A stretch of DNA of 63,269 nt, filler included, from Pelomyxa schiedti (Eukaryota > Protista > Evosea), in NCBI GenBank assembly GCA_020536535.1. It is 7 parts of 7 records of this genome, joined end to end, with 100 filler letters (N's around TTAATTAATTAA, not from the genome) between each part and the next. Parts side by side here need not be neighbours in the genome. Positions count along the whole stretch, not along the records: positions 1 to 24,136 come from JAHLWZ010001055.1; 6 more parts are not named here. One strand, written 5' to 3'. The position numbers and the translations under genes are program-made. The notes beneath the pieces are model-generated. The model saw only the letters and a program-made list of their open reading frames with translations, searched no databases and was not told where the DNA came from. Positions 1-19,957 of this stretch are shown in pieces. How positions within the stretch are numbered: the stretch's first letter is position 1; the number at the start of each line of letters is the position of its first letter.

Positions 1-1410
1 ACTTTTGGATTTGTGTTCAGGGTATTGGCAGATCCCAATCGCTGAACAGGATAGAGAGAAGACAGCATTCAAGGTGAGAAGTGGTCTGTATGAGTTTAAT
101 GTCTTACCTTTTGGACTATCAGATGCACCCAGTACCTTTCAAAGGATAATGGACTTGACCATGGGTGGCCTTCTTTGGGAGGAATGTCTGGTCTATCCTG
201 GTATTTGGAAAGACACTGGAGTGTGTGATTCTGCGAACACACAGGCAAACTGTGTGCAAGGCACACTCGCAAGACTCGAGACTGGACACTCAGAGGCTGA
301 GCCATCACTTACCAAGTTCGGAAATCAAGTTCACAGAAAGATCATCAAGATACCCAAGACCTTTCCCTTGACTTTGGAATCCTTGATAAACGCACACCGA
401 GTCACCTCATTTCATGTGTTGGAGAGATTAAAGGCGGCACACCTTTGCATCAGACTCTCCAAGTGTCAATTTGCAAGACGCAAATTGCCTTCTGTACCTT
501 GGGTTTGAAATATCAGATGAAGGCATACGAATAAGTCCAGCACAACTGAGGGCAGTGAAACAATTTCCAATGCACAATGTGCGGGACGAACCACAGGTTG
601 AGGCATTTGATACTCTGAAGCACGCACTCATGGAGGCACCAATATTGGGGTACCCAGAGGGGAGTTTACCTTTCTGCATTGAATCAGATGCATCGGGCAT
701 TGGTCTGGGTGCAGTGTTATTCCAGCTAATAGGGAAAAGGAGGGTTACTATAGCCTACTGGAGCCAGGCACTAACAAAGGCAGAGAGGAACTATGATACC
801 AGAGAGCGGGAGTGTCTTGCAGCAGTGGAAGCCTTGAAGCACTGGTGGAGCTATATCCAAGGAGCTGTAGGCATCACGTTATACACAGATCACATTGCAC
901 TTAAGTACCTTCTGGAGGCAAAAAACCTATCTGGAAGGTTGGCTCGATGGAGTCTTACACTATTACAGTACAATCCACTTATCCAACACAAACCTGGGAA
1001 GCTCGTGGTGGTGCCACACACACTGTCTCATTATCCAACATCGACTTGCCTGCTAATCAAGAATGAGCCGATGCACAGTAATATGCTAAGAGCACAATCT
1101 CTGGATGTGCAGTCTCAGTGCTCGTGCTCGCAGAGAGTTTGCTTGTGTATTCTACTGAATCACGCACTGGATTCACAGCTTGAGAGAGGCCTCAACTATG
1201 TTAGAGTCACACTGGAAAAAGAAAGGTTACAACAGCAGCAGGACAGAAAGTATTGAGGGAAAGCTCAATTGATGTTGGACAAGCTGTTTGGGTGTATGCA
1301 TCACAATCACTAAGGAAGTAGACAAAGAAGCACGCAAATTTGTTGCTAAGTGGCATGGGCCTTTTAGGGTTATTGAGAAGATAGATGAGAACTTGTACCA
1401 ATTAGAAAAC
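1..1410 (+). mobile_element. pol: Degenerate Ty3/gypsy LTR-retrotransposon pol fragment (RT, RNase H, C-terminal SH3-like integrase tail)
   Basis: RT motifs DLCSGYWQI and GLYEFNVLPFGLSDAPSTFQRIMD. RNase H motifs APILGYP, SDASGIGLGAVL, AERNYDTRERECLA and TDH. Tail KEARKFVAKWHGPFRVIEKIDENLYQL readable at ~1325-1410. YLDD deleted, frameshifts, integrase core missing. Confidence 0.93.
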
Positions 1411-5698: not shown

Positions 5699-8038
5699 TC
5701 ATGAGTTTTCGTGTAACAACACGTGTGGTCTGCTATAACTGATGACCTCCTGAAGAGTATGAATACCAATTACCGCGTTTGGGACTACCTGTGTATTGTA
5801 GGATACTTCAACCACAGTCGCCTTGTTCACACGTTTGGTGGTCCCACTGTTGAGATATATCTTCTGTGGCTGGAAGACCCTCGCCAGAGCACAATGGGTG
5901 TGACCTGTTGTGTTGTGTTTTTTATTTCGGAAGAAGTAAAAACCTCATACCAAGAACGACACAGGCTGTGTGAGGACCTTTCAACAGCTCTGCTGCATAC
6001 CTAAATTTCTCCTTTTAGTGAATGTTATAGAGAAAAGGGTCACACTGATCAGCTGACTCTGATAAGAGCAGTGGTGAGAGCTTAGGTATTACACTGAGGA
6101 GTGTGTCGAAGTTTGTATGTTTATCTCTGTCCTCTTCGAGCAAAGTTTCATATTCGGTGGTACGGATTCCATCAAGCCGAAGTTTTGGCAAAAGTGCGCC
6201 CATCTGTCAAACTCAGTGAGTAACGATGTGAGGACTGGGAGACAAACAAAATCTGAATAGCGTTCTACGACATTACCCTGAGGGTGTACACATTAGAGTG
6301 GCTGAAGAATGAAGATACATACAAAAGATTCTTCAATTGGTTCCTGGTTCGGTCTGGGTATCTTAAGGCGTAATTCCATGTCCAAGGGTTTTTTGTTGTT
6401 GGCCACGAACATCACAAGCCCAAGGAGCGCACTCCAGGCACAGCTGTCAAAGTTGAGGTTCAGGACCTTGCTGAATTGAGTGATAAACATAGGAGGACTA
6501 GGGATACACGAGCGGGTCTGTGACCCCCCAGAATTTCCTGAGCAAAGCCTGCCTCAAAGGAGTATGCTATTGTATTAGCAAGTTTCTCCCGTGGAGGCTT
6601 GCTTGTTCCTTCCTGGCGCACTGCAATATCGGCGGTTGTGCGTACTTTCGTTACAAAGAACCCAAAAGGGAAAACTCCAAAGGGCCCATCTGGAGTGACC
6701 TTCATATCGAAAATATCTTTGGCATGCCCATGCTCCACAATAACAGTACCGTTTGGGGACGTGTATTGTCCCTGTTATGTATGAGCTTTCTTTACAAAGG
6801 AAGACTACATCTTTGTATTCCACTCTTCCTGGACCAAAGAACTCGTCAATGTCTTCTCTGGTGACTGTCATGTCGTGATTCCCGGTAACATAGAAAAATT
6901 TCACTCCACGCACCTGAGAAGAAAAAAAGGATTAAGAGCAAATCTATTCGTTGAATCGTACAGCGAGCGTTTCTACAGTGTCTTTAAACAGTGCCGAGGC
7001 AGCCTTCAAATTAAATACTTCAAGATGTTCAGCCAAGTATTCCAAATATGTCTTTGTTTCTGCACTAATGCGCTCCTGGGTGCTCCAAACCCTGGGGTCA
7101 AATTCCTGTATATCGGACAAGGAACTGAAGAGAATATCCATTGGCTGCAAGACACGTTAATCAAGGTCACAAACCGCCCAAGCTGACCTGTGCCCACAAG
7201 TCGAAGATATCGCCAGCCATTACAACTTGCAGTTGAGAAGGAAGTGAGGCTGGGGGGGTCCCTCCTGTCTTACGGTTGAACCAAGAGAAGAGCCCCTGTC
7301 TAAGAACCTCAATAGTACGCACTGGGCTTTGAATTCCCATCTTGGCTGGGGCAAATGGCGGAAAGCAACCAAGGTGTAGATCACTGAAGACCAGCATGTG
7401 TGTTACTGCCTGATGACTGTGTGATACTCCCACAGTGTTAATCTCTGAACAAGTTGTTGCTGGAGTGCTCAGAATTTGGTTTGGAGGAGTTCCAATAGAT
7501 GGAGGTATATCCATCACTGCCTGAAGGAACTTGGCATACAATTCAGAACGCGGCTTCCATGTGGTAGTTTCCAGATTGGCGGTATACAGTGCCCCAAGAG
7601 GGTGCTTCCCTTTGAGATTACTGCTTTTAAGTACCAGATCAGAATCAGTGTGGGGTTTGAGGGGTTCGCCACCAGTGGAACGCCCAACTGGGTACACGAG
7701 GTTCTGTGAGGTGATGAACTCGATGTAGTCCAGGACCTTTCCTTGGCGCCGATTGACCTGTGGAGAAGGATGAGAATGAAAAGGTGAGAATTTTTCATGT
7801 TGTTACCTCAGTAATGAAGTCAAAAGTGTCCAGCTTGAATGATTTTTCTGGACGGTCTACAGGAGAACCAGCTGATGCCACCACAATGGGGCCTTGCTTC
7901 AGCTGTTTGGTGAAGATTATTGTTGTGTTGAATTGGAAAAAACAACTTCACCTGCAAAAAGCCTACGAAGTCGCCTTCCAGGGCGTAAACCACTTCGGTC
8001 ACTGGTGAGTCCCACATGGCTGCTTGGTAGGTGGACAT
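5699..8038 (-). CDS. Multi-exon gene: N-terminal jacalin-like lectin domain fused to a calcineurin-like (LpxH-like) metallophosphoesterase
   Basis: Exons 8038-7952, 7902-7807 and 7757-7188 have GT-AG sites. Jacalin-like FITE|VNRRQGKVLDYIEFITSQNLVYPVGRSTGG. All five phosphoesterase motifs occur in order: FSDLHLG, GDIFD, GNHD, EHGH, GHTH (5894-5905), followed by YLNSGT. Confidence 0.85.
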
Positions 8039-8064: not shown

Positions 8065-8247
8065 CTTTTTCAATCTTAAGAAGGCCCTTCCCAGAAATTC
8101 TTACGTGGCTGATGTTTTGGGGCGGAAAACACTCCACGACCCGTTTCTCCCTTCACGGAATGGAATGGTCCTAGGTGGAGTGTTTTCCGCCCCAAAACAT
8201 CAGCCACGTAAGAATTTCTGGGAAGGGCCTTCTTAAGATTGAAAAAG
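8065..8247. repeat. Foldback palindrome with perfect 73-bp arms (8065-8137 and 8175-8247) and a 37-nt spacer
   Basis: ctttttcaatcttaagaagg...aaaacactccac is the exact reverse complement of gtggagtgtttt...ccttcttaagattgaaaaag. Confidence 0.97.
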
Positions 8248-8285
8248 CCGCCTGTGACAAAAGACAACAAACTGCCCTGTCCGTC

Positions 8286-9442
8286 ATGACGGAGCCAAAC
8301 CGACGATGTTGGGTGTCGGGGATAACTGAAGTGGCGTATGCTCTGGAAGGTGGACGTGTTGCTTTTCTGCAGGTCGCTTGTCTCCTATTACAAAACTAAG
8401 TCGAAAAACCAGTTGAAACAAGGAGACACAGTTGTTTCCGCTGCTGGATCACTGAAAGGTCCAGAAGAGCGCAGTCTCAAGATAAAGGAAATTGTTCCTC
8501 CAGTTTACATTCATAGCGTACGGAAAAGGTTTTCATTTTAAAACTCTAACCTTTTTGGACAGGTTTCAGGCCGTGCACACACTGTGCTCGATAGCATAGT
8601 ATTCCATCTAAGCTCTGGAGAGCCCATCACAGTTGGGGACTCGACTGGTGGAGACGAATTCAATCATCATCCAGAACCGAATAGAGCCGTCTTCAATATC
8701 AATCTGAAAACTGTTTTCTGGGACACTTACGGCAAGAGGCCATTTGTCAAGCTCTCTCGAAGCAAACCAATCATATGGGGTGCTTGTGGTGAGGTTAAAC
8801 CTCAGTCTAGAAGCTGTGTTTCGGTGTGTTGCCACAGCATGTAGAGTGTTTTATTTAATATTAGCCAGGACTCTCTAGCAGATATGAGTATGAGTGTGCC
8901 ACCAGATACAGGGATGGCTGTAATCAGTGGGTCCCGTGGTGATAGAGATATACAGAAGAGGTTGCTGGAAATCTGGGTGGAAGGTACTTTTTTTTTTGCT
9001 TGTACCTAGAGTCTGAACAAACAAAGAGATGAAGAACCGGCTTACAGATCATATGTGTTTTGCAGAGGAAATAGGGTTGAACTGTCTGATTTCTCTGTCA
9101 AACCCTGCTTCGACGGCACCACTGATCCAAGGCAGTAAAGATCTCGGCATAACTGTTCATGATGGAAAAGGAATAGCCTCATTCAAGGATCTACACGTTC
9201 TGCCGATCCAACCGATATTACGCCTCACTGCTACTGTAACTGGCCCTCAAGCAAAACGATGTACAGTAACCATCCATCGGGATGATGGCGCGCGTTTTCG
9301 ACCTTCTTTGGTGGGTGATGTTGGCGAAGGCTCCCTATTCCTAGCCCTGATAACACTCAATTGGCTGCGGCAAACCGATTTCACCATCAAATTACGTGGG
9401 CTTGACGGACCTGTCAACGTGAAGCTACATTGGACCACGTGA
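8286..9442 (+). CDS. Multi-exon gene: N-terminal jacalin-like domain plus uncharacterised C-terminal domain
   Basis: Exons 8286-8372, 8413-8517 and 8563 onward. YIHS|VSGRAHTVLDSIVFHLSSGEPITVGDSTGGDEF matches the jacalin pattern. Intron positions match those of the gene at 5699-8038. Confidence 0.75.
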
Positions 9443-10049: not shown

Positions 10050-10776
10050 TATTTTATTATGGCGTTCTTGCATAGTGGTTTTGGAGGTATCCTGGCAAAA
10101 GGAGAGTGGATCTGGAGAGGCTCTAGTGAGCACACGTACGAAATCATCTCGTTGGGAACGTGATGAGTCTATGGGATCCAGAAGGACCCTGTTTGCTTCT
10201 TCCTCGCGTTCCTGTGCCAGCAGGTCGTTGAGAATGAAGTCAAGGAGTTATGTTGCTTTTTCAGCAATCCCGGGGTCCTTGTAGCAGGACCCGCAGGCCT
10301 CTGTCATTAGGTTGAAATTCCCAACGATGTTCCTGAGTGTGCTGGTTTTGGACGTTGGTGATGAAAACCAGGAGGTTATTGATCCAATTCGGTGACTTGA
10401 AGAGCCCCACAACAAGCCTAATTAGTTCCCCAACACCATGGGCTGCAAGAATGGAATTGTAGTTGATGAGGAGAACCGGAACGGCTGCGCTGCACGCTCA
10501 TGGAGGCCAACCATGTTGGCGACGTCGACGAGGGGACCTGCACTGTCATCAAACCCAGGAGAGTCCACGACAAAGAGCGAGCTGTTTGGTATTGCAATCG
10601 ATGACGTGTTCCTCGTCTGTGATAGCTTCCTGTGACCGACCGTCAGCCTCTCGTCCTGTTCCTGCTCAACAACGTCGAGCACGGTAGTGGAGGTAGTTCT
10701 GCCGTTTACTGTGGTGACATGTTCCTTCCGAACGATCTTGTGTCCAGCAAGAAAGTGTGCAGTGAGAGTCTTCCCT
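10050..10776 (-). pseudogene. P-loop GTPase-like pseudogene lacking its N-terminus
   Basis: GKTLTAHFLAG (end of G1), GHRKLSQT (G2-like), VVDSPGFDDS (G3), then AVPVLLINY and LLVFITN after a frameshift. Two frameshifts and one in-frame stop. Confidence 0.7.
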
Positions 10777-12488
10777 TTGGTAGTTGCGCAGCCCGCGTTA
10801 AGGAATACGAGGCCAAAGTGCTCTTCCTGCTGGAGTCTGCCATCAAAAAAGTTGGCCAAGGAGATGTCACCCAAAAACCAGGAAATACTCTGTCCAACGA
10901 GCTCTGGGAACTGTTTGAGAAGCTCGTAAAAGCACCAGTGCATGAAGGAGGAGCCTTCACAGTAAAGAGCGGCATTGAGGGAGTTCAAGTGCGGGCCACA
11001 TCCCAAATTGGCCAGCGCACTGTGGCTAGCCTCAGCGAGACTGGATACCTGGCTTGTATGCAGGAGACCATTGCCAAGCTCCAGAGCCAATCCCGGGCTC
11101 CCACAACAACGGAGCTATATGCGCTGCACTACGGGTACACTATGATTGGCTCTGGCGTGGCTCTTCCTCGTTGTTTCAGGCCCCTTGGACTGCCAGGAAG
11201 GAGGCCCCGTGCACAGACCTATGTTGCTCTCACTGACCCCGGTTCTGACCACCTCAAAATAACTTGCCAGGTCCGTGTGCACTTAATGTATTCTGTATCA
11301 GTAAGGATGCATGTTGCTGATGAGGCCCCATGCTTGGTCTTCATTGGCAGGCCTCCTTTTGAGTGCTTGGGCTTGGGCTACAGGCGAGGTTTTAGTGAGC
11401 TTGCGGAACATTATTCGACCATTTCTAAGGACCATTCCCACTCTGGAGATCAGAATTACTTCTTTGAAGCAGAACGCCTCAAGGTTTTTTTTCCCTTTCT
11501 TTTCTGCTTGAAGTTGTATCTGACTTCGAGAAAATAGGCTGTTCACAAAACAGGAGCAGCATGCACCGCAATGTTTATGGATGGCGTGGCTGAATGCAAA
11601 ATCGCAGTGGAGAATATGACTGAGAACCAGGCGATCAGATTCCTCAAGGCGCTGGGGGCTAACGTGGCTCGAAACGAGTCTACACAGGTTCTATCTGCGG
11701 CGTTCAACCTGTTCCAGCCCATTTACAGTGAATCGCAAGGCAGAAAACTCCAGGAACCCATGGATATTGCACGGCTAGGAATTAAAATAGCTGCTGAGGG
11801 TGGCTTTGACAAGGTCACGCGGGATGGCGCAAGGTCCGAGGTTCCCTCAATCCCGGTGTCAAAAACTCTGGACTTTGGTAAGATGCTAACTCTGGCCCAT
11901 GAGGCACACAGAGCCGGCCTCATAACTTACGTCTCTGCTGGTATGACCAAAGAGACCATTCATATTCCAGTCGAGGCCGGAATGGACGGCGTCGGAATTG
12001 GTGTGGACCTGCACTACATGGCGCCTGACAAATCCCTTGGTGCCCTCTGCCCCAGCAAAATCAAGGAGATTCTCGAGCACCGAAATAGGGCACAAGAGAT
12101 GCTTATGGGCCGTGCTGCCAGGCTCCTGGCCTATCTGGACTACAAGGTTTATGAGGGGACCAACACCAGCGCCGAGTACCAGCTCAGTGAGGCTCTCTTT
12201 AAGGCCATGCTTTGCAAAAACGAGACCAGTGTAGGAGAGCTCATTCAGCATGGCGCTCCCCTGACACCTCTCAATGCACCGCTGCCTCCGGCAGATGATG
12301 TGAACGTATATGACAAGTATGTGTCACACGCCCGCGAGCTTCTGGCTACGGAGCACCCAGCTGTTGAGGCTCTCTTACCAATCGGCTGGAGGGAGAAGCT
12401 GCGGGTCATGCTTGTTGACAGGGAACCAAAGACAAACGAAATAAGGTTCTTCTTGAACACACACAGGCTGATCAGAAGAAGCCACTGA
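10719..12488 (+). CDS. Spliced protein with a probable (beta/alpha)8 barrel and phosphate-binding end; 5' end uncertain, possibly a pseudogene
   Basis: Long protein-like exons (ALHYGYT..., AFNLFQPIY, GGFDKVTRDGA, HEAHRAGLITYVSAG, EAGMDGVGIG). Barrel assignment is inferred from the alternating pattern and the xGxDGvxiG motif. Confidence 0.6.
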
Positions 12489-12492
12489 GAAT

Positions 12493-13880
12493 GTGAGAGC
12501 CGCCGTTGAGAAGAAGTCCACTGCTGCACTTACTATTCGGTCTGCTCCTGCTGTTCTTCCCCCTCCATTTGCACCACCCACGTTCCACTCAGAGCTGAAG
12601 GAAAAAGCACTGAAGGTAATCGATTCCCTGGATACGTTGAAGAGATACGAAGAACACCGAATACAGAAGGCGGCAGCCAAAACCGCCAAGCTAGCAGCAG
12701 CCAGTTTTACCGCTACAGTAAGCAAGACCGAGAGTGCTGGTGCACCCATAACAACTGTGAGCTGCAGAATAAAATTGAGGAAGTGTGTCATCAACGACGG
12801 GATAGACTTCAGCAAAGTGCCTGATTTTCTGGGTGTGTTTGACGCCTCTGAGGCATACATTATTGGCGATGTGAAGTTCCCACCAGGTGTCACTGAGGAA
12901 CAGATAATAGCACAGGGAGCAATCATTATCAAACCAAAGCTCGCCACTGATGAGTTCGATCCAATTAGAACTGGCCTGTACACCGTTGACGAGCTCGGCA
13001 TGGTAGACGACAAAATCTATCAGTTCGTGCAGAAGAAGGACAAAACTCAGCTGGAGCTTCTGGCTCAGTATATCCACGATGGGCTAATTCTCGATGCTTT
13101 GAAAGAAGAGAACAAGGGGAGGTATATCGTGGGCGTGATGGGCGGCACAGCATGGCCCGCGGCTCAGAGGTATTCAAGGAGGTGGCTCGTGTCTCATACA
13201 AGCTTGCCAAGAGCGGGTTCACCATTGTCACTGGCGGTGGGCCTGGTGCCATGGAAAGCGCCAACTTTGGTGCTTGGATGTGTGATATTCTGGAGCCAGA
13301 GTTTGAGAAGGAGCTGGCTATCCTGACATCTGCTCCCGATTCTTACGTGGAAGGCGCTGACAGAATGAGGGAGAAGTTCATAACCAACACAGGGAAGATG
13401 TCACTGGGAGTTCCAACCTGGTTGGATGGACACGAACCGTGTCACAGATTCGCCTCCGAGCAAGCAAAGTTCGTGAGCAACGCTGTCAGGGAAGACATAC
13501 TTGTCACCATGTGCAACTGTGGAATCCTATTCACGGAGGGGAGTGCAGGAACTCGCACTGAAATCGCCCAGTTTGCAGTCCCCAACTGCTACGCCTCAGA
13601 GAAGGATGGTGATGTCTCCAAGCCAATCATCTTCTTCAAAACTGTGTTCCAGTCTCTTCTTACCGTAAGTGAAATGGAAGACTTGATTGGAAAGAGTAAA
13701 GGGTACAGCAAGAGGATGTACTGCGTGTCAGATGATGTTGACAGTGTAGTGGGTATAGTCCAGAGATACCGTGATGTTGTACTACAACAGCCTACTGCTG
13801 CTATTGGTACCCCGCAATTAGCACAGCCCATAGCTTTTACAACAAGCCACAGTACTGCCGAGCAGCAGGAAGAGAGAGCC
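12493..13880 (+). pseudogene. LOG-family (PpnN-like) nucleotide phosphoribohydrolase with a 1-nt frameshift at ~13147
   Basis: FDPIRTGLYTVDEL, IHDGLILDAL, VGVMGG[H]SMARGS, IVTGGGPGAMESAN, SLGVPTW.GHEP, NAVREDIL and EGSAGTRTEI (PGGxGTxxE-like). Adding one C to ggcggcacagc restores GGHSMARG. Confidence 0.85.
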
Positions 13881-14043
13881 AAAATGGAAGCAGCACGTGC
13901 TGCCATGCAAGAGTGGGTGACAAGGGATGGCATGGTTATTGGAGTGGGGCAGGCACAACAGTGAAGTACATTATCGATGAGCTGAAGAAGCTTGTGGATA
14001 CCGGGAAGGTGAGAAACATCACTTGTGTGCCAAGCTCGCTTGT
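13881..14043 (+). pseudogene. rpiA: N-terminal fragment of ribose-5-phosphate isomerase A, in frame with the LOG domain, frameshifted and truncated
   Basis: KMEAARAAMQEWVTRDGMVIGVG[x]GTTVKYIIDEL...NITCVPSS matches the RpiA N-terminus. 1-nt deletion at ~13949; DGAD motif absent. Confidence 0.8.
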
Positions 14044-14084
14044 GAAAACTTGCTTGATTGAATTCCAGTGGGTGGCCTTCTCTC

Positions 14085-14620
14085 AGTACCAATAGCCAAT
14101 CTGTTGCACCTGCCTCCTCTTCTACAAACCATTGCTCATCTTTGGTTTCTTTGCATTCTTCATCTAGGTTTTTTGTTTTGGTTGTTTTCTTTTCTTCCAC
14201 TCTTTTCTGACAACTCACTTTCTGCCTCTCAACAACTGTTTGTAAGTGGTTGATGTATGTTTGCACCTCGGGCAATTGTGGATCTGGGAAGCATCTTGGC
14301 AAGACCTTGGCATTCAACAAGCACTTCATGAAGATATGAGGATAACCTTCATCTTGAAAGTCTTGCCTGAAGTTACCAGGCAATGATTCACCCATTGTGA
14401 CATGGTGTCTAAAGGTCTTCAACCAATCTTGCTGCTATTACTACATCGGAGATACAGAAATTTTGATACCTCTTTGAGAACCACTGTTATTGCGGGGTCG
14501 CTTGTGCTCCAGATTAGGAACTGTCATATTGATGATATCAAAGCTGCCACTCACATCAGAATTAGTGGTGCTCTCAATGCTTTCCACAAAAGAAGAAGTA
14601 GTGGTGTTTACATCCTCAAT
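14085..14620 (-). CDS. Exons of an uncharacterised spliced gene, apparently truncated at its 3' side
   Basis: GT-AG bounded exons encode ...KRPRNNSGSQR|DWLKTFRHHVTMGESLPGNFRQDFQDEGYP...QLPE|VERQK...ATDWLLVL. Confidence 0.5.
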
Positions 14621-15030
14621 ATGTTAAGCTATTAATAACAAAGACAGATAACATCGCCGTCATTTGAAGGGGCCAGTGCAAGAGGATGAATGCGGAAAAA
14701 AGAAAGACCTCCAGAGATTGGAGGGACACAATAACGGAAAAGCGCTGCTGTGTCCTCCCTGGTTCTTGTTCTGTGGTCTGTGTTGGTGTTAGAAGAAAAA
14801 AGAAAGCAAGAAAGAAAACGGATTCAGGAAAAGCTACTGGTAAAAACCAAACAAAAATCAAGCTATGAAAATAATAATTGAGTGTTGAATAAAGTATTGT
14901 TGCGTTTGAGTTGTTTGGTCTTGTGAAGGAAAAGCTAAGTCGCTGGCGAGCGTCGTGTTTTATGTTTTTCGGTGCAGGAACTTGTGATCGGTTTCTCAGC
15001 ATTACTTTCTATCTCTTTGTGTTGCAATCA

Positions 15031-17987
15031 ATGCCCACGAAGACTGTGAAACTTCTCTTTCGCACAGTTGCATCTAAATATCGCATTCGAAGAAAGCTCT
15101 CTGCAGAGGGCACGGTATTACGCCGAAAGACAAACGGACAAAACTTCAACAAACAACTTAAACCAACAATGTGCCGCCGCTCCATCCGCTCATCTGTTTC
15201 TTCTGACGAATCGTCTTCCAGCTCGGGGGGTGACTTCCGCCAATTCCGTCAAACAATGGCGCACTTTCCTCCGGTCGGGGTTGTTGTTGTGGACCCAACC
15301 ACCGGGTACTCCTCCAGGCCTGGTGTATTCCCGCCCCAACATCCTCCTGCTTGGCTGGTACACAACAGGAAGGCGAGGTGGCAACCTGCCCTAGTACCGA
15401 CCATCGCTCCCCAGGTTACCCCAACTTCCCCCCAGGCTGTTCCCTTTCCTTTCTCTCCTTCCCATGCACTGCTGATTCCTTCTCTTCCTTATTTCCAATC
15501 GCAAATGCCCCTGGCACCGTACACAGTGCAGCCCAGTGCAATCCAAAACTACTCTCAAACACTCCCACCTCGGGTGAAGACACTAACTGGGAAAAGAAGA
15601 ACAAAGGGCTCTTTGGGCTTGAAAGAAATTAACAATGGCCCTGATGAAAACAAGGCTGAAGGATCAACCTCTGGGATGCCTCCCCCCAAAATGGGCAAGA
15701 CAAGCAATGGGGATTCACAATCCTCAAGAATTGGCTGTGTACATTCAGAGAGTGGTACGTCCCATACCTCACACCCAAAAACAGAGGCTACAGACGTGAC
15801 ACCTCGCAGGATTAAACCCCAGAATGAAAGTCCCCAAAGTAAAGGTCCAATGGCACCTCAATGCCAGAGTCTCCTCCCTCTAGGATCTGGATGTTCAACG
15901 ACACAACAGAGTTCAGAAAAGAGAAGAGCCAATCTGGACCGAAACAACTCAAAAAGAAGTAACGTGCCCCTGCAGTTTCCTCCTGGTTCCATTTCTCCCA
16001 CTTTTCACTCCCATCCTTTCTGTAAGAACCGTACACATGGCAGGAGCAGGAGCAGGAGCAGGGATAGGAGGAGGAGCAGGAGCAGGGATAGGAGGAGCAG
16101 GAGCAGGGATAGGAGGAGGAGCAGGAGCAGGAGCAGGGATAGGAGGAGGAGCAGGAGCAGGAGCATAAGGCACAACAGGGAAAAATCTGGGGGAAATATT
16201 CAGGTGCATGAACGACAAACAGGTAGAAGCTCGGGAGCACTGCAAAGTAATCACAAGCGGGAAAGCCGCAGTCCTTCAGGTGGGTGCAAAAGGGATCTCT
16301 TCTGTGAAACAAAAGGAGCCCCACATATAGCACCCAGTACCGTTGGTCACAGTGGTGCCGACACTCTCCAAACAGCCAACATGCGTGAGGAGAAAAGAGA
16401 CGTGGCTTCCTCGGTTTCTGTCTTGCAATCAGCAGCAGAAACAGCCCAAGGAACGGCAAAAAGCCAGGCTTTGACACAATTTGGGGCACCTTCACCCAAT
16501 CTTCCTCTTGGAAAAACCAGATGCCCATCTTCCTCCCCTGTTGTGCCGTCTGTGCCTGTAGTTACTCTTTCGACAGGAGTAGTTCCCTCAGAATACAATA
16601 AGTCACTGGTTCCAGTCACATCTTCTATCACGATGTCCCTTTGCTCCTCCAGCGATCTTTCTCAAGACCACAGTGGTGATAGTAACAATTCTGTTCGTGC
16701 CCTTCAACCAACTGCAGGACCCCCCAAAATATCTCCACCAGAAGAAATAGATGCGGAGCATCTAACAATGCCTCAGGAAGTAATACATTCTATAGAAGCA
16801 GCTTCTGAATTTAAAACCACACCCATTGCACATTGTGTGGATGCTGACCCTCTTCCACTAGTAACAAACCTTGGTGGGCATAGTAACGCAGGAGGTACAG
16901 AATCTACTCCAGATGGTACCATGCAACTCGTTGACGAGCAGGGCTGTGTCCTTAGCCAAGTGCGTTCTACCAGTCAGAACCAGGTTCCAGTATATACTTG
17001 CTCTCCCGGCAATTTTTCAAATCAAATGATTCACCTGATAAAAATGTTGACTGAGTTTCTCTATCCACAGGAGGTTTGTTTCCTTCCACCTAAATCAGAT
17101 ATGTTAACGTCTAACGGCAGGGCACGATTGTACAAAGGAAGGAGGAATTTCTGTCCCATCTTATTGCTTTTTTAGAGACAGCATCCTTATCGGCATGGAA
17201 GCAACAGGATTTCTCACATCAGTTTGTCTTGTATGTTGAGTGTCATCGAATAAACCCATTAATCCCCCATAGTTATCTTTCGTGTCAGCTACTAAAAGGG
17301 AGATACCTGACGGAGAGATATACATTGTTGTGTTGTGAGACAAATGCGATCTTGAAAGCACTTTCCGCCAAACCAATAAAAAAGAAAAAAGCTCCCCATA
17401 AGGCATCTGCATCATCCCCAGATCAGCAACGTCCCGTGATGGAAGGTCCAGGTTCCATTTCCAGTGATCTAGATCTTTCCGAGTCCATCCTCCCACCTCT
17501 GGAACCAAATGGAACCGAGGCAACACTTTTTCAGAGTGACATGCTGCCCCAAACTCCAACGGTTCAGCAGCCACAGGCTCATTCTGGCACTCAGCAACCC
17601 CTCATAGCTCTGCCCCCAGCACTGATGCCCCCTTCCCCACTCCCAGTGCCCTACATTTCACAAGCACAACATTTTCAGAACGACGTTCCACCAGGACTGC
17701 ATAATAAAAAGCAAAGACAAGCCGCAAGGAGAAAGTTGCACAGAAAGCAGGATAAACTCTGCATTTGGATGGGCATGCAACTGAAATACATGGAGGCTCT
17801 GGTTCTTCAAGCACCCCCAGGTATCCCTGTCCCACTGCCCAACTGTCATTTTCCACGATGCTGCTTTGTGGTGGATGATAAAATGCATATGAGTGTACTT
17901 TTACAGTGGACCATCTGCTGCATGGAAACCTTGGATTGTGACCCTCAAGTAGATACACCAGCACGTCAGAGCCCCCAGTGCTCATGA
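15031..17987 (+). CDS. Large low-complexity Ser/Pro-rich protein with an RS(D) dipeptide-repeat tract, at least two exons
   Basis: 754-aa ORF 14911-17175 plus 17229-17987. RSRSRSRDRRRS tandem repeat at ~16040-16165. Confidence 0.6.
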
Positions 17988-18781
17988 AACTCTTCCACAC
18001 TGTAATGTCCCCTGTGCTTTTATGAGGGAAAAACCTAGCTTTTACCCTGAACTGAAGGATTCTTTTTTCGTTTGCTTGTGTGAATAGGATGGGTACCTTG
18101 AGCTGATTGGATTCACCTTGAAAAGCGTGAGAAGGACAAATTTCTGAAGGGATGGCCTCTTGGCGGACAAGACTGAGTATGTTGAAATTTCTGTGGTGGA
18201 GTTTGGTAGGGTTTTCGCGTCTCCGTGATGTTCACTCAGAATTAGAACTGTAGTTTTTCTTTTGACTGCGTTTTACACTGTAAAGGCTTGTTAGCCAACA
18301 TTGTCAGACACTGCCAAAGCTAAGTTGATCGAAGCCTTGCACAAGTCATCTGCCGTGGGCGGGCTTCAACCATTTTCCATTGTGGGAAATACAATGCCAT
18401 TTCGTTCATAGCCAAGATTTCCAAAACTAGTGTCTCTTGCACAAACATCCTCATGTGTCGGAGCAAGCACTGCCGCACACACTCCTTCCTTGTCATTGAC
18501 AGGAGATTTTGCTCACTAAGATCTCACAACTCCACTCCTGGCTACGACATAGATGCCACTACGTTTTTACCGGTGTGGCGAGGTGACTCAGAACTACAGC
18601 GAAGTACGGATGGATTTCTGGGAAAACTACCTCGAATCTGTTGGGACCCTGAGGGAGATAGATTCGACACCTAGAACTTAGTCTAGTCTAGTGGTCACTA
18701 CCCAAACCAAATCTGCCTCGGGACAACAGGATATTTTTTTTCTACAAATTAGACGAAAAAATCCGTCCTGTGTAATCAGAG

Positions 18782-19957
18782 ATGTGCGACGACGGAACAA
18801 GGAAGGGAATAGCGTCGCCACCAGAGCACGTGGCGTGGGCACGCTACCAATTCGTTGCATTTTGCGTGGTGAGCGCCGCGCCTCGTTGCGCGGCGAAAAG
18901 CTTCCTCGCGGGGATTCCAAGCAACGTTCTGGTGGACGAAATAGGCAGGAGGTGGATCATGGGCGTGAACAGGCGGGCCGTCGTCGGGAGTTTGTACCGG
19001 AACGGTTCCGGCCAGGCTCGCGGTGGGTACTGGTTTGTGAGTGTGTCCCACACACTCGGAGTGGTTAGAATATCCTCCGAGTTGGGAGTGAAGCCGTTCG
19101 GCGATGTGATCATGGGATGGCTCGACAGGAACATGGTCGTTTCGGTGAAGGCCACCGGGAAGGAAAGATGTCCTTCCATCACGAGGTGGCCTTCGGGAAG
19201 TCTCAAGGCTTGCTTGAGGGAGCGTTACTCCGAGGGTTCTATAATTACAAAGTTTGTAAGAAGCTGCAGTTGGGCTGTGGTTTACACACCCGGGAGGACA
19301 GCGATGGAAATGTGGCCCATTCCGCTGTCATATTACCCTCTGGTTCTTGTTCCCCTGGGTTCCCAGGAAGAAGAGCTGATGTGGATGGATATCATTGATG
19401 GGGAACAGGGAGTTGTGTCTGTGAAGAAGGGTGAGCTTTACTTCCTTCGGTTCATTGATTTGGAAAAGACATACAAGCTCAGGGTTTTTTCCATTACACA
19501 GGAGTTCCAGCTGGACACCATATGTTGCGATGTCTACTTTTCCACCAAGCATGGAATCATTCTGTCACTTCAGTATCCTCCACCACACAAATCCCGGCAG
19601 CCTTCGTGGGCAGAGAGAGAATTCCAGATGGTTATCTTACATCCGAACCAAGTGGTAAGCAGAAGCTACTTCATGGCAAGCAAAGTGGATTCGTGGCACT
19701 TTGTTCCAGCAGAAGCATGTCCCAGCCGTGGTGAAACCCATGTATATTCAACAAATGACTTGGATCATGTATCACAGGTGTTCATGCATGACCCAGATTC
19801 TGTAACCAGAGTCTCTGATGGCCTGATAGCAATCCAGTGCCAAAAACACATTGACCTGCTTGATGCCCTGACTGGCCGTTGGTTGTGGCGCCAGGCTGCC
19901 CCTCTTGATACTCAGGACCTTCTCTATATGAATAACCTCAGGCTCTCCTCGTTCTAG
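18782..19957 (+). CDS. Intronless lineage-specific family protein (conserved N-terminal helical motif plus beta-rich domain)
   Basis: 391-aa ORF; N-terminal ARYQFVAF...PRCAAKS...VDEIGRRW shared with other ORFs in the window. Confidence 0.75.
   Translation: MCDDGTRKGIASPPEHVAWARYQFVAFCVVSAAPRCAAKSFLAGIPSNVLVDEIGRRWIMGVNRRAVVGSLYRNGSGQARGGYWFVSVSHTLGVVRISSELGVKPFGDVIMGWLDRNMVVSVKATGKERCPSITRWPSGSLKACLRERYSEGSIITKFVRSCSWAVVYTPGRTAMEMWPIPLSYYPLVLVPLGSQEEELMWMDIIDGEQGVVSVKKGELYFLRFIDLEKTYKLRVFSITQEFQLDTICCDVYFSTKHGIILSLQYPPPHKSRQPSWAEREFQMVILHPNQVVSRSYFMASKVDSWHFVPAEACPSRGETHVYSTNDLDHVSQVFMHDPDSVTRVSDGLIAIQCQKHIDLLDALTGRWLWRQAAPLDTQDLLYMNNLRLSSF

Follow-up and report, generated by a model that had tools for sequence, protein, structure and literature searches.

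Is a jacalin-like lectin module really joined to a metallophosphoesterase in one gene of Pelomyxa schiedti, an anaerobic amoeba, and, if so, where did the catalytic part come from and what might the combination do? The question arises from a preliminary description of the window analysed here (the whole stretch of 63,269 nucleotides, filler included, along which all positions are counted), which proposed such a fusion at 5699-8038. The explanation that, taken jointly, we regard as rather probable implies a real two-module gene, a hydrolase of a bacterial-type family as its catalytic part and an N-terminal module suited for reuse.

Gene structure and transcript support

The coding region occupies the minus strand from the ATG at 8038 to the stop codon ending at 5699. 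Its exon chain was set by exact matching to a database protein, NCBI "hypothetical protein Pelo_15872" (P0001, 617 aa), every residue of which is reproduced; the chain comprises 12 exons separated by 11 introns, all of GT..AG type and 37-49 nt each. Across the window, neither Rfam models nor a tRNA scan gave a match.

5699..8038, minus strand: complete coding sequence of Pelo_15872, 617 aa, exact-match exon chain reproducing P0001
8038-7952, 7902-7807, 7757-7188, 7144-6962, 6913-6809, 6771-6508, minus strand: exons 1-6
6466-6323, 6277-6248, 6203-6046, 6000-5951, 5904-5789, 5749-5699, minus strand: exons 7-12
7188..7757, minus strand: exon 3, 190 codons in an unbroken frame covering the final third of the jacalin-like module, the linker and both motif I and motif II

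Since exon 3 spans both modules as a single open frame, the jacalin-like part and the phosphoesterase belong to one polypeptide, and the proposed fusion within a single gene is borne out by a domain boundary that is crossed without a stop codon. This location of the boundary also bears on the reading of Pelo_15872 as an artefact, namely a bacterial contaminant or two genes merged by the gene predictor, which is hardly conceivable: the nearest relatives of the catalytic domain are bacterial, as a contaminant would require, but the reading is already contradicted by eleven spliceosomal-type introns, by paralogues spread over four different Pelomyxa contigs, by the uninterrupted frame of exon 3 and by an identity of only 18-26% to any bacterial protein of the family alignment. 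Pelo_15872 is thus a genuine intron-rich nuclear gene of P. schiedti, and its intron density and the Smart-seq2 data agree with the genome paper (PMC8887013).

At the RNA level, the junction of exons 2 and 3 is seen on a contig of a cDNA-type run, which continues via exon 3 into exon 9. It is the sole contig of this run over Pelo_15872 (6091-7759, depth 9), with intron 2 removed and six annotated introns retained; because of this retention the RNA support amounts to one splice junction, with none for introns 3-11. The check for a single transcript, suggested in the preliminary description, is therefore answered in part: the junction is present in RNA, but on the same contig six introns remain unspliced. 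One might suppose that splicing of the gene is poor or the gene is in decay, and that its main RNA keeps introns, coding for the jacalin-like module and motifs I and II only. The state of this contig and complete splicing of the neighbouring gene in the same run comply with such a view, which nevertheless seems improbable to us, given that the frame is kept through all 12 exons, that catalytic residues are invariant in four diverged paralogues and that these paralogues keep the intron positions. Besides, at a depth of only 9 the contig could be explained by carry-over of genomic DNA or by pre-mRNA in a single-cell library, and rare variants get lost from contigs.

Catalytic domain

Five motifs typical for metallophosphoesterases (DxH, GD, GNH(D/E), H, and GHxH) follow in this order in Pelo_15872 and do not vary among four Pelomyxa paralogues and ten bacterial relatives, so that the initial reading of all five as intact (DLH, GDIFD, GNHD, EHGH, and GHTH) held exactly as it was stated.

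5702..7406, minus strand: metallophosphoesterase domain, aa 179-617, AlphaFold2 core pLDDT 70-90, LpxH as best fold match
7368..7388, minus strand: motif I, FSDLHLG, aa 185-191, with the D-x-H metal ligands, invariant in alignments A2 and A5
7142..7214, minus strand: motif II, GDIFDLWAQP, aa 243-252, cut by intron 3 after ...WAQ
6869..6883, minus strand: motif III, GNHDM, aa 323-327 (alignments A2 and A5)
6724..6735, minus strand: motif IV, EHGH, aa 360-363 (alignments A2 and A5)
6646..6672, minus strand: family signature FPFGFFVTK, aligned with 11 bacterial proteins, which have LPxGYFI(S/T)R
5894..5951, minus strand: motif V, GHTH, aa 563-566, with the Gly codon split by intron 10 (phase 1)

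The position of intron 3 within motif II and both the position and the phase of intron 10 are common to all four paralogues. Between motifs IV and V about 199 aa are inserted as a cap, for which the confidence of AlphaFold2 is low. On the basis of the model and profiles, residues 179-617 are assigned to calcineurin-like metallophosphoesterases (PF00149/PF12850) with a predicted alpha/beta sandwich core. More than 200 metallophosphoesterase chains align with the AlphaFold2 model at Z of 8 or more, and in P0001 Pfam finds only Metallophos_2 (16 bits versus a cut-off of 27), while the PF00149 cut-off of 21.5 is exceeded by two paralogues, P0002 (22.5) and P0004 (22.2).

Among solved structures LpxH stands closest. 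VIA-align superposes about 190 residues with an rmsd of about 3.3 A and gives Z of 14.3-15.2, other metallophosphoesterases scoring three units lower; the best 25 Foldseek matches are all LpxH, the family profile finds 5k8k at 2.3e-6, and hhalign returns 95.9% versus E. coli LpxH. Identity in these structural alignments is just 10-16%, and BLASTP of single exons versus E. coli LpxH found the GDxFxxW word alone. Searches with smaller queries remained silent: PDB sequence searches with exon 3, exon 6 and the four-sequence profile gave nothing significant, a word-index protein search and a contig scan of genomes with exon 3 alone gave no match, and an Atlas feature search with the same exon gave no usable one. 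Anti-phage defence models did not match the catalytic domain.

N-terminal module, divergent neighbour and paralogues

7551..8038, minus strand: jacalin-like module, aa 1-130, exons 1-3, supported by Pfam, Atlas neighbours and occurrence in the neighbouring gene
7899-7662, minus strand: Pfam Jacalin match, aa 31-93
7407..7550, minus strand: Pro/Ser/Thr-rich linker, aa 131-178, delimited by alignment A3 and residue mapping

Judging by sequence, residues 1-130 are probably a divergent, trimmed jacalin-like module. The PF01419 profile scores 14.9 bits versus P0001 (18.2 for residues 1-135 alone), under the gathering score of 22, and 22.6 and 26.1 bits versus the N-domain of paralogue P0002, over this score; the two N-domains are 55% identical. 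Jacalin families account for 25 of the 30 nearest ESM-Atlas clusters (score 0.92, 196 of 256 features in common). Other approaches were less telling, with pLDDT of 31 for an AlphaFold2 model built from a two-sequence alignment only, rice SalT 5gvy as the best match of the N-domain profile among PDB sequences (E 0.98), no match in a word-index protein search with the N-domain alignment and none for Pfam on individual exons, as expected for short pieces. The profile match is also incomplete: it spans profile positions 41-108 of 136 in P0001 and 33-112 in P0002, missing the first 30-40 and the last 24-28 positions, and 14 residues of the module's last third are missing from P0002. In jacalin-related lectins the sugar-binding loops sit at both ends of the domain. 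The linker behind the module is predicted to be flexible; in P0002 it is longer and contains more Thr than in P0001.

A second gene with the same N-module lies head-to-head with Pelo_15872:

8286..9442, plus strand: divergent neighbouring gene, 327 aa, transcript start at 8263, spliced cDNA contig with a template-switch-oligo end
8065..8247, strand not assigned: perfect inverted repeat of 73 nt (8065-8137 and 8175-8247) with a 37-nt loop

For BLAST and MAFFT the neighbour protein was taken as the translation of cDNA-supported exons. BLASTP relates it to P0002 (8e-26) and P0001 (3e-17); its N-module is as in Pelo_15872, the introns falling at corresponding exon boundaries, and its C-terminus is unrelated and assigned to no family. 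The inverted repeat takes up most of the 247-nt spacer between the divergent genes; it is absent from the other loci compared, including three other Pelomyxa contigs, and its flanks display no relatedness before exon 1. Because the neighbour carries the module on a different C-terminus, we infer that the N-module is a reusable targeting or regulatory unit.

The catalytic domain has likewise been combined in several ways. Pelo_16518 (P0002) has the architecture of Pelo_15872, with 50% identity and 11 of 11 introns at identical positions and phases; Pelo_11712 (P0003) is the catalytic domain alone, having no N-module; and in a protein annotated as "caspase 8" (P0004) a Peptidase_C14 domain ahead of the catalytic domain replaces the jacalin-like module. 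P0003 and P0004 have at least four intron positions of the catalytic domain in common with Pelo_15872, and a fifth is probably hidden in the P0004 gene model. When the exon spanning the junction was compared with 1.84 billion representative proteins, the Pelo_15872 product and one paralogue alone were matched, and in the literature no paper joins jacalin and metallophosphoesterase in one protein; the early statement that no such fusion had been described thereby gains ground. The domain combination is unusual, a new architecture from known parts.

This mobility of modules would fit the view that the N-module has lost sugar binding and is instead a protein-interaction or regulatory part of a lineage-specific kit, the enzyme acting on something soluble, for instance a nucleotide or a signalling phosphoester. 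The unrelated C-terminus of the neighbour, catalytic domains standing alone or behind a caspase domain, and the weak, partial jacalin match with its 14-residue loss in the paralogue all fit this possibility, which we hold as conceivable though somewhat doubtful, since anti-phage defence models do not match the catalytic domain and the long cap points, by analogy with LpxH only, to a bulky or amphipathic substrate.

Bacterial relatives and origin of the catalytic domain

By tblastn and profile searches, relatives were found at 12 genome loci and 23 metagenome loci (E from 3e-12 to 7e-5), and all those found outside Pelomyxa in the genome and metagenome loci searched are bacterial. The proteins of the genome loci L004-L015 are 360-540 aa long and come from Thermodesulfobacteriota, Bacillota, Bacteroidota, Myxococcota, Acidobacteriota and others. 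In its sequence features the catalytic domain falls into this uncharacterised GNHDM/EHGH long-cap family of many bacterial phyla, and the resemblance of its EHGH...P.G.F.T region to bacterial members, noticed at the outset, reappeared as a common signature in the alignment with 11 bacterial proteins. L012, the one member tested, carries a Pfam Tat signal, and N-termini of several other members are Tat-similar or hydrophobic. No conserved gene partner was seen near bacterial members in the neighbourhoods examined. A TonB-dependent receptor adjoins L004, a glycosyltransferase lies near L008, and a 273-aa ORF is located upstream in L012 and L014 only.

In the tree, the four Pelomyxa copies form one clade with support of 100/100; branches are long throughout and the bacterial sister group is not settled. 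Bacterial relatives outside Pelomyxa and one clade of Pelomyxa copies with common introns would fit an old transfer with subsequent gain of introns, in line with the bacterial origin and later intron gain initially put forward as possible. In the simplest history, the domain would have been acquired once, long ago, from bacteria; introns would then have been gained, the gene duplicated and domains shuffled, the last step giving rise to jacalin-fused, caspase-fused and stand-alone forms.

Possible function

Most likely, the catalytic domain would bind two metal ions via residues of the DxH, GD, GNHD, EHGH and GHTH motifs and would hydrolyse a bond, either phosphodiester or pyrophosphate, in a substrate that the cap holds. 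Since metal ligands stay invariant across paralogues that are only 27-51% identical, an active hydrolase rather than a pseudo-enzyme is to be expected. The N-terminus of Pelo_15872 shows no recognisable signal peptide, so the protein is probably cytosolic, and the cytosol also houses two of the three endosymbionts of P. schiedti (PMC10579272).

This setting invites the assumption that the module is a working lectin by which the enzyme would be directed to prey or endosymbionts, its targets there being glycans or glycolipids such as precursors of lipid A or other sugar-phosphate-lipid conjugates. Jacalin family signals (Pfam and Atlas), the cytosolic bacterial symbionts of the host, a protein with no visible export signal, and the activity of LpxH, the closest solved relative, on a sugar-nucleotide lipid with a cap in the same place all accord with it. 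We nonetheless consider this assumption unlikely, as the unmatched profile ends are where jacalin-related lectins carry sugar-binding loops, LpxH-specific residues are missing (GNHD stands for GNRD and EHGH for HGD), and LpxH models give 13 bits or none versus cut-offs of 134-190. Broader still, and no less speculative than improbable, is the idea of a Pelomyxa toolkit for sensing or handling cytosolic prokaryotic endosymbionts or ingested bacteria, in which the bacterial long-cap phosphoesterase would serve as a shuffled effector, coupled in two genes with a lectin-like sensor and in one with a caspase-like protease, with the sensor also wired to another output in the neighbouring gene and with cutting of envelope-precursor or signalling phosphoesters as a possible action.

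Returning to the two-module hydrolase that we favour, the Pelo_15872 protein, if active, would be the first example of a jacalin-type module ahead of a binuclear metallophosphoesterase and a way into a widespread, uncharacterised bacterial phosphoesterase family, one that is, among known relatives, the closest to the antibiotic target LpxH yet differs at the residues defining LpxH. The gene is also a compact case of probable transfer from bacteria to an amoeba with later gain of introns, duplication and shuffling of domains, the host being one in which intracellular prokaryotes are permanent residents. Should the module bind no glycan, what is left is a lineage-specific multidomain hypothetical protein.

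Comparison with known systems

Three groups of known proteins are comparable with Pelo_15872. With jacalin-related lectins (PF01419, including ZG16-like proteins and plant chimeric jacalins) it shares a module that matches the middle of the Jacalin profile; in plant chimeric jacalins, too, the lectin precedes an unrelated domain. The partner here differs, being a metallophosphoesterase, and the match is partial and sub-threshold in P0001.

Bacterial metallophosphoesterases L004-L015 share with it, over the full length of the domain, SDxH, GDxxDxW..P, Y(V/L)(T/K)GNHDM, EHGH....F, (L/F)PxG(Y/F), GHTH and YxNxG, and also a cap similar in size. They differ in having neither a jacalin module nor introns, at the 18-26% identity given above.

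LpxH, the UDP-2,3-diacylglucosamine diphosphatase (structures from E. coli, K. pneumoniae, H. influenzae, and P. aeruginosa; e.g. 5k8k, 6ph9, and 8qjz), has in common with it the calcineurin-like core, motif II of the form GD(L/I)F(E/D)xW and an insertion between motifs IV and V, where LpxH has its substrate-binding cap. This insertion comprises about 199 aa in Pelo_15872 versus about 78 aa between the corresponding motifs in E. coli LpxH, and GNHD and EHGH occur in place of GNRD and HGD of the E. coli enzyme. The NCBIfam LpxH equivalogs (NF003743/TIGR01854, cut-offs 134 and 190) do not match P0001 and give 13 bits with P0002 and 20-36 bits with bacterial relatives. Scores so far under the cut-offs, together with GNHD and EHGH, rule out Pelo_15872 as an LpxH orthologue. 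What remains of the label "LpxH-like" is that LpxH stands nearest among solved proteins in both fold and profile; orthology does not remain.

Gene model and unity of the encoded protein

The region has a eukaryotic organization, in which short open frames on the minus strand are interrupted by 37-49 nt spacers that carry stops and have GT..AG ends, and the interval assigned in the preliminary description to a jacalin-like lectin fused to a metallophosphoesterase (5699-8038) is exactly the coding span of the database protein P0001 (617 aa).

Features of the locus and of a related contig
5699-8038, minus strand: Pelo_15872, coding span from the ATG at 8038 to the stop ending at 5699, exact-match exon chain
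7188-7757, minus strand: exon 3 of Pelo_15872, 190 codons, no stop
8286-9442, plus strand: divergent neighboring gene, 327 aa, fully spliced in cDNA
471-1253, plus strand: ORF with reverse-transcriptase RNase H domains (PF17917 at 3e-32), corresponding to an annotated 337-aa gene
L017:3189-6050 (another Pelomyxa contig): gene of P0004, annotated 'caspase 8', Peptidase_C14 plus the same phosphoesterase domain

The chain reproducing P0001 comprises 12 exons and 11 GT..AG introns, with an in-frame stop immediately 5′ of the ATG. This intron structure fits the genome-wide picture of P. schiedti (7.43 introns per gene; 98.4% of introns bounded by GT-AG), whose annotation drew on single-cell Smart-seq2 transcriptomes (PMC8887013). 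With exon 3 as the sole query, an exhaustive search of 1.84 billion representative proteins yielded two proteins only, both from Pelomyxa schiedti: P0001 (100% identical), deposited as “hypothetical protein Pelo_15872” and in this form already known, and P0002 (610 aa, 50% identical), named “Pelo_16518”; not even the bacterial relatives of the catalytic domain were among the returns. Full-length analyses were run on the public database protein records. No description of a jacalin-like plus metallophosphoesterase architecture was found in the literature or by the exon 3 search.

Exon 3 starts at residue 62, within the jacalin-like match (Pfam, aa 31-93), and continues via a linker to FSDLHLG (aa 185-191) and GDIFDLWAQ (aa 243-251). 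Since it covers the match, the linker, and motifs I and II, the domain boundary is not made by a predicted splice. P0002, encoded on a separate contig, has the same two-domain layout, and its 11 introns all correspond in position and phase. The proposed fusion in one gene is thus borne out, and, as far as can be judged from sequence, both modules belong to a single protein.

Public sequencing runs containing the stretch number four, three being genomic-DNA-like and one (X4) showing cDNA features, namely a template-switch-oligo tail at 8263 and a fully spliced contig of the neighboring gene. Over Pelo_15872, the X4 contig (6091-7759, depth only 9) carries 15 loose letters matching the end of exon 2, from which it follows that intron 2 was removed, and joins the jacalin part to motifs I-IV. 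The notion of a single transcript is to this extent supported, but six annotated introns are still present in the same contig, and the splicing of introns 3-11 is therefore predicted not from RNA but from the conserved frame, the order of the motifs, and comparison with the paralogues.

Divergent neighbor and genomic context

Transcription of the neighboring gene starts at 8263, as defined by the template-switch-oligo end in X4, and its four introns (40-45 nt) are confirmed by the spliced cDNA contig. It opens with the same jacalin-like module, with introns at matching exon boundaries (BLASTP against P0002, 8e-26), while the C-terminal 200 aa have neither a Pfam match nor a nameable relative. 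Most of the 247-nt head-to-head spacer is occupied by a perfect 73-nt inverted repeat with a 37-nt loop (8065-8247), at whose arms public-run contigs end. The repeat was not found in the other loci compared, three other Pelomyxa contigs included, and its flanks show no relatedness before the paralogous first exons are reached. The structure may represent a foldback insertion of recent date, or else a hairpin belonging to a shared promoter.

Downstream of Pelo_15872, the segment 4800-5450 looks like a repeated element: word depth in DNA runs is 4-15 times that over the gene, its contigs display many variants and short skips, and diverged copies occur in X4. The RNase H domains at 471-1253 indicate that part of a retroelement sits at this end of the contig. 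Within 10632-19954, neither several long ORFs (301, 305, 754, and 391 aa) nor the annotated 955-aa and 1088-aa genes have Pfam matches; the contig is rich in orphan genes.

The N-terminal module

The Jacalin profile PF01419 exceeds its gathering score on P0002 (22.6 bits for the whole protein; 26.1 bits, E 1.3e-5, for residues 1-130) and stays under it on P0001 (14.9 and 18.2 bits) in the same register, the two modules being 55% identical. In a protein-language-model search, 25 of the 30 nearest clusters were Jacalin families, including ZG16-like, plant, and bacterial ones. Profile search against PDB gave only an insignificant match, rice jacalin-related SalT (E 0.98), and the AlphaFold2 model (pLDDT 31) was useless. 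Because the match omits both profile ends and P0002 is 14 residues shorter in the last third, the module is probably a trimmed jacalin-like domain, with sugar binding only putative.

Bacterial relatives and domain shuffling

Pattern scans of bacterial genomes and metagenomes with the Pelomyxa alignment as query revealed relatives of the catalytic domain at 12 genome and 23 metagenome loci (22-34% identity over best segments), which supports its assignment to a bacterial-type family. The genome loci belong to Bacteroidales, Myxococcota, Bacillota, Amaricoccus, Thermodesulfobacteriota, Acidobacteriota, Sumerlaeota, Kiritimatiellia, and Aminicenantes. Their products (360-540 aa) have a cap, the insertion between motifs IV and V, similar in size to that of Pelomyxa and keep the signature SDxH, GDxxDxW..P, YVTGNHDM, EHGH....F, LPxGYFI(S/T)R, GHTH, YxNxG; generic Metallophos models alone exceed threshold on them. 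The nearest ESM-Atlas structure clusters are bacterial metallophosphoesterases too. Pfam recognizes a Tat signal in one tested member, and the N-termini of several others are Tat-like or hydrophobic; no conserved gene neighborhood was found among the loci compared. Extra domains of 140-150 aa without Pfam match occur N-terminally in the Bacteroidales member (L004:3521-3940), which adjoins a TonB-dependent receptor, and C-terminally in the Amaricoccus member (L007:5100-5572); Pelomyxa is therefore not alone in having accessory modules attached to this enzyme.

In the maximum-likelihood tree, the four Pelomyxa domains form a single clade (100/100) on a long branch for which the tree resolves no bacterial sister. 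Four intron positions within the domain are common to all four paralogues in the same phases, and a fifth to three of them; exactly there, the public model of P0004 has a Phe-rich in-frame insertion of 23 residues, which is probably a retained intron missed by the annotation. The history is most simply read as a single ancient acquisition from bacteria, after which introns were gained and, later, copies arose by duplication.

In this genome the catalytic domain occurs after the jacalin-like module (P0001, P0002), stand-alone (P0003, 418 aa), and after a Peptidase_C14 caspase domain (P0004, 752 aa; E 1.3e-28), and the jacalin-like module is borne by two types of C-terminus, the phosphoesterase and that of the neighboring gene. 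Together, the modules make up a small, lineage-specific kit whose parts are interchangeable. No link to the catalytic domain came from anti-phage defence models, an immune-type reading being therefore speculation.

Proposed working and comparison with LpxH

All five metallophosphoesterase motifs are present, as originally described, and invariant across four Pelomyxa proteins of only 27-51% identity. They supply an intact ligand set for a two-metal center within an LpxH-type core, which carries a large insertion at the place used by LpxH for binding of its lipid substrate. No hydrophobic signal sequence was seen by eye at the N-terminus. Pelo_15872 is most likely an active cytosolic phosphodiesterase or pyrophosphatase, whose cap would set substrate choice and whose N-terminal module would control placement or regulation. 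Two of the three endosymbionts of the amoeba lie free in the cytosol (PMC10579272), so that the protein may, hypothetically, act at the interface between host and symbionts. Taken together, the earlier interpretation is partly supported: architecture, LpxH-like fold, and bacterial-type family hold, while glycan targeting and substrate remain conjectural.

In the AlphaFold2 model built from a four-sequence alignment, the core is usable (pLDDT 70-90), whereas an insertion of about 180 residues is modelled poorly. The best 25 Foldseek matches in PDB are all LpxH (E down to 1e-7); VIA-align to LpxH yields Z 14.3-15.2 with rmsd about 3.3 Å over about 190 residues, the next families (polymerase B-subunits, MJ0936, SbcD/Mre11) following at Z 11-12. 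The 14-sequence family profile matches H. influenzae LpxH at 2.3e-6, and hhalign assigns the comparison with E. coli LpxH a probability of 95.9%. “LpxH-like” is thus a fair label for the resemblance, but membership in LpxH is rejected: motif III is GNHD instead of GNRD, motif IV is EHGH instead of HGD, the cap reaches about 199 aa versus roughly 78 aa in E. coli LpxH, and scores fall an order of magnitude short of the NCBIfam LpxH equivalog cut-offs.
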